Assembly (NCBI GenBank): GCA_033442325.1
Contig: JAWQFM010000017.1
Span: 1,256,292-1,276,891 of the forward strand
Direction: 5' to 3'
DNA from: Salpingoeca rosetta
Taxonomy: Eukaryota > Protista > Choanoflagellata
DNA: 20,600 bases
Below the pieces are notes generated by a model. The model did no database searches and was not told the origin of the DNA. It saw only the letters and a program-made list of their open reading frames with translations. This document shows positions 13,996-17,378 of this stretch, in pieces. A program made the translations under genes and the position numbers. How positions within the stretch are numbered: position 1 is the first letter of the stretch; each line of letters opens with the position of its first letter.

Positions 13996-16900
13996 ATGTC
14001 CACCTCTCAAAAGAGGAAAACCAAAGAGTCTGACATCACAAGCCTGTCGACAAACGACGTGAGTTATTGTTTGGGTTGTGTGCGAACGTGTGGCGATAGC
14101 CCGAGAGGGCGCGTGTATGAGTGTATGGTTATGTGCATGTACATGTGCGCACCTGTGTATGTGTGAGTGTGCTCACCTATGTATGTGTGAGTGTGTGCAC
14201 CTGTGTGTATGTTTGTGTGCATGTGTGTGCAGTGTGTGTGCATATGTGTGTGGGTGTGTGGGTGTGTGTGTGGGGAAAACATTCATTCAACACCCTTCTG
14301 GGCGCCAAAAATTTGTCTTACGTGCCACAACCAGCCCATAATCTCACTTGTGGGCACCTGCTGTTACTTTCGCTCCAAATCGACCCGCCCTCTTTTCTTT
14401 CAGGCTGCTGTGCTGCGCGCGCATATCTGCAAGCAGCAATGAAAGAGTACGAGAGCCTTTTGGGGGGCACTCTGCAAGACTGCAAGCGATCATACCGCGC
14501 CTTCGCCGAGCAGATCAGCACAATTGCAGGCCGGCATGGGATCGAAATCGGTTCACCCGGCCCTCTCGACAACGCACCCAAGGCAAAGAATTATGTCGAC
14601 AGCATGCTGAAGCAGCCCTACACGGAAAACATCAAGAACTTGCTCCAGCAAGTCCGCAGTGTGCTGGATGAGAAAAAGCAGATACCAATGGACGACGTGG
14701 AAGACTTCCTTCAGAAGCTTGACAACGTGACACGCAAAGGGCTGTCCGAAGAGCAACGGCAGTTTCGACAAGGTGCGCCTGTCTCACTCAGCCTTTCATG
14801 TGCGGCTGTGTGACCAAATGGGCTGACGGCTGTGTGTGTGTGTGTGTGTGTGTGTGTGTGTGTGTGCATCGGTGGTGTTAGATTACTGCGAGCGGCCCTG
14901 CACTTGAGTACTCTGGTTGACTGACACGTTGCTTGCGGGTTGTTTTGAACTCATATTGGCTGTTTGATGTGGTTCGTGGCAGATTTGGAGTCAAGCGTAA
15001 CCCCCAGCAGCGCTGCCAAGGAGAAGGAGAAGAACAAGGATTCGGCCCACAGAACAGTCTATTCGCAGCCGTTCTCTGCCGAGCTTCTCTGCCCCAACTG
15101 GCACCTGCACTACGAGGGGTTTCAATTGGCAGTCGATGAGGGCACAAACACGGGTAAGGTCGCTGTCGAGCATGTGTTTGCTTGCTGTGTACACGTATAC
15201 ATGTGAGCGTCCTTTTTGTGAGAGAACGTGGCATGTGTGTGTGCGTGTGTGTGTTTGTGTGTCGGTGCTGATGCATGGTGGTTGAGTCTTTGGCGCTCGT
15301 GCGCGGGTGTGCTGGCACTGGAGGGGAGTATTTCTCTGTATTTCTCTGTCGCTCACACCGACGCTGCACCATGCACGCCCACCGCACTGCAGGCTTTTCT
15401 GACGTGTTTTGCACGCCGGAGACGCTCTTCAACGACTGCATGCAAGCGCCCCTCATCAGGGCGTGTGGTGATGCAAAAGTGTACGTCAAGAGCCACGCGT
15501 CGTTTAGAGCCGACCCCGCTGTTGTCGCCGACTATGTTGTGCGTCTGATCTCGAACTACTTCTTCTACCCGCTGTTGCTTGAGCTCAAGACCGATGGCAG
15601 CGGGCCGACACAGGATGCTGCCAAGGCGCAGGTGCTGGAGTATGCATCACGGGCCATCAAGTCTGCGGGACCGGAGTGGCGTGCTTTGAAAGGGTATTTG
15701 TTTCCCTTTGCCATCACCGTCTGCGGGCAGAACGTGTCCGTGTACGCGTGCACGCTGGGCGATGAGGTGCACGGCGACGAGGCCTTTCCCAGTATCCTCC
15801 ACACAAAACTTGGCGACATGTGTGTGTGTGTGTGTGTGTGTGTGTGTGTGTGTGTGTGTGTGTGTGTGTGTGTGTGTGTGTGTGTGGGTGGGTGTGTGTG
15901 TGTGTGTGTGTGTGTGTGTGTGTGTGTGTGTGGCACACATGATCCAGCACGTGCATCTGTGCAGTTGCTGTCGACTGGCCGTTGCCTTGTACACTGCTAG
16001 TTGTCGTTGGACCTGCGCTCACATTGGTTTCCTGTGCTGTGGACTTTAGTTGGAGAAACTCGGGAATGTCATTGCGTGGCTGCTTGACGAAGAGCACATG
16101 GCGCATTACGAGAATATTTCCGCCATTGCCCAGGTACCCATAGCAGGAGTGATTTGATGCCCGCTTACTCCCTTGTCTCCTTGTCTTCTTGCTGTCTTGC
16201 TCGCCTGCTGCCTTCGTATTCTGCCATCATGGCACACCTCGCACATGCACACACAAATACTGTGTGCGTGCGTGTATCGTCTTTCTTTCGTTCAACAATC
16301 AACAATGATACTCACTTCCGCACTCGCACACACACACACACACATACACACACACACATACGCCATGGCACAGGGAAAAGGGAGCGGTCTCACCTCCATT
16401 CCGGAGCACAGAGTCTACAATGTGTCATCCGCAGCTAGCGGTGGTGCGCGCAACAACAGTGGCAACGGCGACACCAACGATAGCGCTGATGGGGGGGTGC
16501 AGAATGAGGAAGAGCGCGACAAGGCAGCCACGCAGACCGACACAGCAGCCAGAGGCAAGGAGGGGCATCAGCGTCAGCAGCTTGCGGTCACCAAAGCAGC
16601 ACGGGCGAGGTCTGCCAAAGTTGCCACGACATACGAGATGTGCGTCTACAAAGGCGATGAGGATACGGTCACGGTTGCATTGGTGAACGGCGAGGTGTTG
16701 AAGGTGTGCGGTGGCCACGACATTGGCGCTGCCAAGGAGGCTGACAGGGAACGGGAGGGTTGGAAGTACCTCTATCCAGAGGAAACGGTGAAAGTGCACG
16801 AGCGGTCACGCCCCGTGTTTGCCTGTCCCGACCTATCGAAGCATATAACGGGCGCGGGCACCGACGGCAAGAAGGCGCTTCACGGCACGGGCATCAAGGA

Positions 16901-17378
16901 CAAAGCGGGGCTTGCGGCCGCTGCTGAGCACCTCCTTATTTTGTCGAAGACGAACATGTGCCACTGCGACGTCCGATCCCACAACATCCTGCGCAACGGC
17001 TGCATCGTCGACTTTGGTTTCCTGCGCGAGGCGGGTTCGCAGCTTCCCAAATCTTATTCCACGAAGCTGCGGGAGCGCCCTCGCAAGTGGCTGCTGCATC
17101 ACGACGCAGAAGCGATTTCTGCAGACGTTGTTCTGGATTGGGAATCGCTGCTGTTTGCATACGTATTCTCCTCTACTTCTCTCTCCACCGCCATGTACCG
17201 GTTGCTTGAGGGCAAGGCGTTCCTGCTGGAGTGGCTGGAGGCCAAGTTGGCCAAGTTGGACAAGGACGACAAGAAGGAGACAGCAGCTCTGCAGGACAAG
17301 AGCGATGACGAAGACAAGAAGGAGACAGCAGCGCTGCTGCACAACATTATGCAGCACATTGCTTGCGCGTACTTCTAA
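13996..17378 (+). CDS. Putative PD-(D/E)xK restriction-endonuclease-fold + atypical protein kinase fusion (Crinkler/CR-effector-like; FunK1-like kinase)
   Basis: Exons: possible 13996-14058 (MSTSQKRK..), 14404-14772 (in-frame ATG at 14439), 14983-15153, 15393-~15819, ~16050-16133, 16374-17378 (TAA). Junctions 14772/14983 and 15153/15393 are phase-consistent. The first junction and the 15819/16050 junction are not cleanly resolved. Nuclease and kinase motifs are listed separately below. Confidence 0.72.
15393..15819 (+). CDS. Exon encoding a PD-(D/E)xK (REase-fold) nuclease-like domain
   Basis: Peptide [52 protein letters not shown]: helix Glu (15419), strand Asp (15530), ExK (15581-15589), then QxxxY (15629-15643). 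This is the order expected for REase-fold active sites. Confidence 0.68.
16374..17378 (+). CDS. Terminal exon: low-complexity linker + minimal atypical Ser/Thr-type kinase domain
   Basis: EVLKV (Lys 16701), alphaC-like EADRERE, catalytic loop HCDVRSHN (16962-16985), IVDFG (DFG 17010-17018), subdomain [10 protein letters not shown] (17136). The exon is a 1005-nt open frame preceded by a CAG acceptor at 16371-16373. Confidence 0.85.

Follow-up and report, generated by a model that had tools for sequence, protein, structure and literature searches.

The window analysed here is a 20,600-nucleotide stretch of nuclear DNA from the choanoflagellate Salpingoeca rosetta (scaffold GL832972.1), and all coordinates are positions within it. 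It carries a five-exon, plus-strand gene whose product is predicted to join a PD-(D/E)xK-like, putative nuclease domain to a minimal protein-kinase-like domain. A query with the last exon returned a sole match, a public 674-residue protein named 'kinase subdomain-containing protein [Salpingoeca rosetta]' (P0001), which is 100% identical to it. By searching GT/AG pairs, we found exactly one exon chain that translates to P0001, made up of five plus-strand exons and four GT..AG introns of 210-240 bases each, all with (TG)n or (CA)n tracts. This map reproduces P0001 and agrees with an original prediction, drawn from the DNA letters alone, of one multi-exon plus-strand gene in a free-living species. 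The two exons that it had placed at 15393-15819 and 16374-17378 were correct within 4 bases. Whole-protein analyses used the public record P0001, and exon pieces were searched separately. The gene is laid out as follows.

13996-14058, plus strand: upstream exon of 21 codons, outside the public model but with homology to exon 1 of the paralogue P0002
14439-14772, plus strand: exon 1 of P0001, residues 1-111 and one base, helical N-terminal region (exact exon map)
14983-15153, plus strand: exon 2, residues ~112-168, end of the N-terminal region (exact exon map)
15393-15823, plus strand: exon 3, residues ~169-312, core of the PD-(D/E)xK-like domain (exon map, motifs, models and weak fold matches)
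15419-15421, 15530-15532, 15581-15589 and 15629-15643, plus strand: exon 3 motif residues E178, D215, E232/K234 and Q248..Y252
16050-16133, plus strand: exon 4, residues 313-340, last two helices of the nuclease-like domain (exon map, alignment and model)
16374-17378, plus strand: exon 5, with linker, kinase-like domain, tail and stop codon
16374-16628, plus strand: first part of exon 5, residues 341-~425, disordered linker rich in Gly, Asn, Asp and Ser (alignment and model confidence)
16629-17168, plus strand: minimal protein-kinase-like domain in exon 5, residues ~426-605 (residues, fold matches and paralogue profile matches)
16701-16703, 16962-16985, 17010-17018 and 17136-17150, plus strand: exon 5 kinase motifs K450, HCDVRSHN (537-544), DFG (553-555) and DWESL (595-599)
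17169-17378, plus strand: C-terminal helical tail and stop codon, end of exon 5 (tandem repeat, alignment and model)
17249-17338, plus strand: 45-nt tandem repeat, encoding 15-residue units rich in Lys, Asp and Glu in the C-terminal tail

The original prediction had the gene begin at 13996, which is partly right. An ATG at this position opens a 21-codon exon with a product identical to the first 21 residues of P0002, and a GT donor comes next. However, this exon is out of frame with the rest of the gene, whose 5' part carries one frameshift relative to P0002, and no frame-compatible acceptor for it was found upstream of 14439. The frameshift prevents in-frame joining, and the public model therefore starts at 14439. 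The frameshift may be real, or it may be an assembly error.

Alignment of the family, which comprises at least 17 annotated S. rosetta proteins, gave a common plan: a helical N-terminus of ~170 residues, a conserved domain of ~170, a low-complexity linker, a second conserved domain of ~180 and a helical tail. A helical N-terminus, a Gly/Asn/Asp-rich linker and a kinase with DWESL had all been foreseen, and all are present in the models and the alignment. In a full-length AlphaFold2 model, the N-terminal region is predicted to be all-helical, at low confidence. The linker, very variable in length between paralogues, is predicted to be disordered, with a predicted local distance difference test (pLDDT) score below 50 over residues 344-440. 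The tail forms long helices at 610-641 and 649-671 in the same model, and the number of its repeat units varies among paralogues, with several extra in P0002. Both conserved domains occur in 13 of the 16 aligned members, and the remaining three are fragments or short models. A single exon of P0010 encodes residues 397-751, a stretch that holds the linker together with the final helices of the nuclease-like domain and the entire kinase domain. Therefore, the fusion does not depend on the predicted intron at 16134-16373 of the window. The nuclease-kinase fusion that had been proposed for this gene is thus a property of its family, with at least 13 paralogues keeping both domains.

The middle domain carries, in order, E178, D215, E232-L-K234 and Q248-x-x-E-Y252. 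A motif string E...D..ELK...QxxxY had been located at 15419-15643, and this span runs exactly from the E178 codon to the Y252 codon. Among 16 members, E178 is found in 14 of 14, D215 and K234 each in 13 of 15, Q248 in 14 of 15 and Y252 in 14 of 16; position 232 is Glu in 13 of 15 and Asp in the other two. The expected conservation of D, ExK and Q was thereby borne out among the paralogues. We modelled the domain in two independent AlphaFold2 runs, on exon 3 alone and on full-length P0001, with the paralogues as alignment. The exon 3 run (pLDDT 71.5) gave a helix at 8-23, strands at 29-36, 44-51 and 60-65, a helix at 70-90 and a strand at 102-110. The full-length run, with pLDDT of 81-92 in this region, gave a helix at 178-193, strands at 198-205, 213-220 and 229-234, a helix at 239-259 and a strand at 271-279. 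Both runs show the alpha-beta-beta-beta-alpha-beta core topology of the PD-(D/E)xK superfamily, and the models place E178 on helix 1, D215 on strand 2, E232 and K234 on strand 3, and Q248 and Y252 on helix 2. Exon 4 contributes helices at 313-323 and 326-339 (pLDDT 86-89) that are kept in all subgroups.

Fold comparison of this domain with Foldseek pointed the same way. About 30 of the top 50 matches in the PDB are nucleases of the restriction endonuclease (REase) fold, as judged from the descriptions of what are weak matches. The highest probability was reached by BpuSI (0.96, with a template modelling (TM) score of 0.47), and others with this fold included RecU, Hjc, YaeQ, DrdV, R2, VRR_NUC and RecE. 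Three more (3ijm, 1wdj and 9y1l), described in their entries only as REase-like, we take to be Uma2-like. In BFVD, a collection of predicted viral protein structures, most of the named matches were PD-(D/E)xK nucleases, again weak. A PD-(D/E)xK fold is well supported by the predicted topology, the motif placement and the enrichment of weak matches, yet it is not proven, and the profile libraries are silent on this domain.

The C-terminal domain is a minimal, atypical kinase and may well be active. K450, H537, D539, R541, N544 and F554 are invariant (13 of 13), with D553 in 13 of 14 and G555 in 11 of 13. The top 50 PDB matches of the full model, in which the kinase region has moderate confidence, were all protein kinases (E-values 0.001-0.011, probabilities 0.8-1.0), and a profile of the family matched kinase catalytic loops in the PDB. 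The Pfam APH profile matched 9 of the 16 members, and P0010 exceeded its curated cut-off (25.5 vs. 23.2 bits). P0009 gave weak matches to Bud32, RIO, ABC1, Pkinase and Pkinase_fungal at the catalytic loop. A comparison with the FunK1 (Pkinase_fungal) profile had been proposed for the gene; P0001 itself matched no kinase profile. PADLOC returned weak catalytic-loop matches to PD-T4-6 and mad6. The family also has motifs of its own, namely the invariant Arg of HxD(V/I)RxxN and a conserved ERP and D(W/F)ESL. When Pfam was run on P0001 and on each stop-free exon piece, nothing was significant, the kinase included, and a phmmer search of P0001 against PDB sequences returned only noise (e.g., ecotin, E 0.12). 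We note that zf-IS66 appeared in three members and was judged spurious: it was sub-threshold (in P0014, E 0.0001 and 23.1 bits vs. a cut-off of 27.3), and the P0014 match lay in the low-complexity linker (residues 605-645).

To date, the annotated members are P0001-P0005 and P0009-P0020, which lie on many scaffolds and share the same architecture. The public annotation calls them only 'kinase' or 'hypothetical', as had been expected. Protein identity between paralogues falls to 20%, and some subgroups are just 20-25% identical yet keep the same domain order. With P0001 as query, HMMER returned ten matches from 1.84 billion representative proteins, every named one from S. rosetta and from other scaffolds. 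Further members came from a profile search with a family alignment (A1) and from a query with P0010, whose nuclease-like region found just two more S. rosetta proteins. A check for paralogue expansion had been proposed, and it turned up these members along with the duplicated loci described below. The description of the gene as an orphan consequently holds for the family as a whole, but not for the gene, as at least 17 paralogues are annotated in S. rosetta.

Beyond S. rosetta, the only relative in the scan of 1.84 billion representative proteins was one fragment, P0008. However, the profile search with A1 scored the 8000 candidates sharing the most words with it and did not recover even P0009-P0011; therefore, its silence on other taxa is weak. 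Restriction of the family to S. rosetta is accordingly provisional, because word-based searches test other taxa weakly. Viral contigs scanned with a narrower alignment held no relative. P0008 is a 170-residue fragment of the nuclease-like domain on a 1332-base Logan contig (SRR24908322). It may come from another species because it is at most 42% identical to every annotated paralogue. The same contig has a second open reading frame (ORF) of 169 codons just upstream. In metagenomes, we found one near-identical family copy, recorded twice, on the identical 2622-base contigs FUWD013338576.1 and FUWD013125415.1 (GCA_900162855.1; L008 = L009 = L010). This copy, introns included, is 87-92% identical in DNA to S. 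rosetta loci and is a mosaic of several paralogues. P0006 and P0007 were rejected as transcripts, being prokaryote-style ORF calls on the FUWD metagenome contig.

Comparison of DNA between loci showed that the gene sits in a larger duplicated unit.

11676-17656: segmentally duplicated block of ~6 kb, comprising the whole gene and part of its minus-strand neighbour (DNA comparison)

The block matches the loci L002 and L003, the latter with two copies, at 83-92% DNA identity, introns included. By contrast, L004 shares only the gene itself (13791-17443). L003 (scaffold GL832965.1) is a tandem pair at 4977-12622 and 15382-22998 with a period of ~10.4 kb. Each of its units contains one family member and the minus-strand neighbour, and one 1.4 kb stretch is 99% identical between them. 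The left edge of the block falls in a CA-rich tract. The window has assembly gaps (runs of N) at 2399-2654 and 17674-18460, and the second of these opens ~300 bases past the stop codon, obscuring where the block ends on the right; in the L002 and L003 copies, the similarity continues for ~1.6 kb more. Long (TG)n/(CA)n microsatellites lie at 14060-14300, 14830-14870, 15820-15935, 16320-16365, 17390-17450 and 11676-11750, and hence in every intron, just past the stop codon and at the left edge of the block. These tracts might favour ectopic recombination. They also explain all of the long 'inverted repeats' found; we found no terminal inverted or long terminal repeats, only microsatellite repeats. 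Pfam scans of the members revealed no transposase, integrase or reverse transcriptase. Given the lack of terminal repeats and transposase-type domains and the differing extents of the blocks, segmental and tandem duplication fits the expansion better than transposition.

Against five paralogous copies, the ratio of non-synonymous to synonymous substitution rates (dN/dS) was 0.46-0.66, and exons were better conserved than introns in comparison with the two closest copies. The ratio of non-synonymous to synonymous differences per site (pN/pS) was ~0.4-0.6 in the nuclease exon, a level of constraint that equals or exceeds that of the kinase exon. In exon 1, it was ~1 against two paralogues. The enzymatic exons are thus under weak purifying selection, and the N-terminal exon changes in a near-neutral manner. 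Synonymous divergence is mosaic along the gene: exon 1 is nearest to L002 (pS 0.055, vs. 0.30 to the first L003 copy) and exon 2 to the first L003 copy (pS 0.014, vs. 0.126 to L002). This mosaic suggests gene conversion or recombination among paralogues.

The genes on either side of the family member, and the ORFs that share the block with it, are as follows.

8660-13001, minus strand: gene model with a Tectonic-family Pfam match (TCTN_DUF1619), upstream neighbour
12279-13112, minus strand: 277-codon ORF in the duplicated block
12866-13756, minus strand: ORF in the duplicated block with a signal-peptide-like start and then a very long poly-Thr run
19076-20344: BTB_2 gene, downstream neighbour

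A HEAT-repeat gene lies further upstream. The gene had been described as inserted between two conserved housekeeping genes, and this is roughly the case; however, the flanking TCTN_DUF1619 model and BTB_2 gene are conserved gene types rather than classic housekeeping genes, and the gene sits in a segmentally duplicated block of ~6 kb that takes in part of the minus-strand neighbour as well. The 5' part of the Tectonic-annotated model falls within this block. The 277-codon ORF recurs in L002 and twice in L003 at 85-96% protein identity, and the poly-Thr ORF recurs there in pieces only, at 57-100% identity. Neither ORF had a Pfam match, apart from a sub-threshold DUF6384 in the poly-Thr ORF. Both are annotated as the 5' part of the TCTN_DUF1619 gene model, and this model may be a chimera of two genes. 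We considered a functional pairing of the family with its minus-strand neighbour and rejected it, as the ORF is co-duplicated only in L002 and L003 and is absent from L004-L006.

Our preferred reading, to which we give a probability of about 0.5, is that the gene product acts inside the cell as a nuclease controlled by its own kinase and belongs to a lineage-specific conflict family, either defensive or selfish. It builds on the exon structure, the domain order, the conservation of catalytic-type residues and the duplication-driven expansion of the family. At least 17 fast-evolving copies found almost only in S. rosetta suggest a defence or selfish gene family. In such a protein, the middle domain would be an active metal-dependent nuclease and the effector, while the fused kinase would bind ATP and either regulate the nuclease or mark targets by phosphorylation. 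Sensing or the binding of partners, as well as oligomerisation, could fall to the fast-evolving N-terminal region and to the tail. The family would then act in conflict, defending against viruses or other invaders or playing a selfish or suicidal role, with a mode of action like that of the coupled REase and kinase in Crinkler-type effectors and in bacterial PglW and DndF.

Several observations weigh against this reading. For the nuclease-like domain, Foldseek returned no match at E <= 0.001 in the PDB or BFVD; the best E-values were 0.045 and 0.0086, respectively, with TM-scores of 0.3-0.47. Likewise, none of the family members was matched by an REase profile from Pfam, NCBIfam, PADLOC or PHROGs. 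The models themselves rest on a shallow paralogue alignment of 15-16 rows. Of the REase fold that had been proposed, the topology and motif placement are therefore upheld in both AlphaFold2 runs, but not by any single significant fold match or by a profile. A few paralogues are substituted at catalytic-type positions, and activity may thus not be essential. In the kinase-like domain, there is no GxGxxG glycine-rich loop ahead of K450, and the candidate helix-C Glu, E468, is Glu in just 2 of 13 members and hence not conserved. The glycine-rich loop and the helix-C Glu are also absent from several atypical kinases. Finally, the proposed conflict role is drawn only from the expansion pattern, the evolutionary rate and analogy.

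A further-reaching form of the conflict reading, which we put forward tentatively and judge clearly less probable, is that these proteins make up an unrecognised choanoflagellate system of innate immunity or self/non-self recognition. Here, the variable N-terminal region would be a sensor that triggers a kinase-gated PD-(D/E)xK nuclease, and the arrangement would have been invented independently or inherited from an ancient pool shared with the REase-kinase modules of Crinklers and of PglW and DndF.

Alternatively, the kinase could be the working part of a set of lineage-specific signalling kinases, with the PD-(D/E)xK-like domain reduced to a non-catalytic binder of nucleic acids or proteins. 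The public names and all profile matches concern the kinase only, some paralogues are substituted at D215, E232 or K234, no nuclease profile matches, and many PD-(D/E)xK domains are known to be inactive. However, the Asp, Glu and Lys are kept together with Gln and Tyr in 13 of 15 members, and the nuclease exon (pN/pS ~0.4-0.6) is no less constrained than the kinase exon. We consider this explanation rather unlikely, although more probable than the alternatives that follow. Somewhat less probable still is that the copies belong not to the host but to a mobile or otherwise selfish DNA element, which would use the nuclease to spread itself. Such an element would account for many dispersed copies across scaffolds, for 83-92% DNA identity that runs through introns and past the coding region, and for the tandem pair with its ~10.4 kb period. 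Yet the repeats proved to be microsatellites, with neither terminal inverted nor long terminal repeats among them, and no transposase, integrase or reverse transcriptase was detected. The duplicated blocks also vary in extent, as L004 has the gene only and L002 and L003 include neighbour sequence. Moreover, the genes have spliceosomal introns, paralogues as little as 20% identical retain dN/dS <1, and viral contigs held no relative.

We give very little credence to two other explanations. The gene model could be an annotation artefact that joins separate nuclease-like and kinase genes, considering that a 240-base intron and a long low-complexity linker separate the domains and that there is an in-frame ATG shortly before the acceptor of exon 5. 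Set against this, at least 13 paralogues, including the subgroups of 20-25% identity, share the same domain order, and residues 397-751 of P0010 are encoded in one exon. It is similarly improbable that the protein is a housekeeping nuclease of DNA repair or recombination with a regulatory kinase. The set of E, D, ExK and QxxxY does resemble that of RecB/Cas4/YqaJ-type nucleases, and the weak fold matches include RecU, Hjc, RecE and YqaJ-like proteins. Still, a housekeeping gene fits poorly with at least 17 fast-evolving copies, with a lack of conservation in other eukaryotes and with a scan of 1.84 billion representative proteins that returned no relative outside S. rosetta but the fragment P0008.

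The conflict reading matters because S. rosetta is the species most used in the laboratory to study the closest relatives of animals, and the ways in which choanoflagellates handle viruses, mobile DNA and bacterial attack are very poorly understood. An expanded and rapidly evolving family with a kinase joined to a nuclease fold has the kind of architecture typical of conflict systems, such as PglW and DndF in bacteria and Crinklers in eukaryotes. If the reading is true, it provides a concrete candidate conflict system in a holozoan. The family also brings to light ~17 proteins whose nuclease-like domain is not annotated and escapes current profile libraries. Should this domain prove inactive, the finding reduces to a lineage-specific kinase family.

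An REase domain coupled to a kinase recurs as an architecture of conflict systems (PMC5289972; PMC12839542). Approximately one sixth of Crinkler (CR) C-termini have it (PMC5289972), and these include the CRN8-type REase-kinase toxin modules of CR effectors (Zhang et al. 2016, summarised in PMC5289972). In such modules, toxicity is attributed to the REase (PMC5289972). The S. rosetta family resembles CR effectors in combining an REase-like fold and a protein kinase in one polypeptide and in forming a lineage-specific, rapidly diversifying eukaryotic multigene family. By contrast, S. rosetta is a free-living filter feeder, and the family protein looks intracellular. Across 16 members, no Pfam match to a Crinkler header, ubiquitin-like or LxLFLAK-type region was found, a result that covers the header types present in Pfam. 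Pfam includes a Crinkler N-terminal model. On direct reading, the N-termini of P0001 and P0002 are polar and charged, with no hydrophobic leader that would indicate a signal peptide, and no CR protein appeared among the sequence-search matches, nor did any sequence or profile match link the family to CR proteins. Thus, of the Crinkler-like character that was originally predicted, the architecture stands, while neither a header, a signal peptide, CR sequence homology nor an REase profile match was found; the likeness is best regarded as architectural only, and it is shared with PglW and DndF.

PglW, of type-2 BREX/Pgl systems, and a subset of DndF proteins have a NERD-REase domain followed by a pseudo-kinase and an active serine/threonine/tyrosine kinase (PMC12839542). 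As in the S. rosetta family, a PD-(D/E)xK domain thus precedes a kinase, in company with fast-evolving putative sensor regions and, for our family by analogy, a conflict context. However, the bacterial proteins have 1400-1600 residues, tandem kinases, a winged helix-turn-helix (wHTH), an inactive STAND domain and a place in defence operons, and neither a NERD nor a PglW profile matched any family member. Within the kinase-like domain, the small core, beta-3 Lys, HxDxxxxN and DFG recall the minimal kinases APH/ChoK, Bud32, RIO, Kdo kinase and FunK1. Unlike these, P0001 itself lacks any kinase profile match, and the family has its own ERP, D(W/F)ESL and the Arg of HxD(V/I)RxxN. A similar logic is found in RNase L and Ire1, where a nuclease effector is coupled to a kinase-fold regulatory domain, and the IRE1 kinase domain was among our kinase fold matches. 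In those proteins, the nuclease is an all-helical KEN domain C-terminal to the kinase, whereas the nuclease-like domain of the S. rosetta family has a predicted PD-(D/E)xK topology and lies N-terminal to its kinase.

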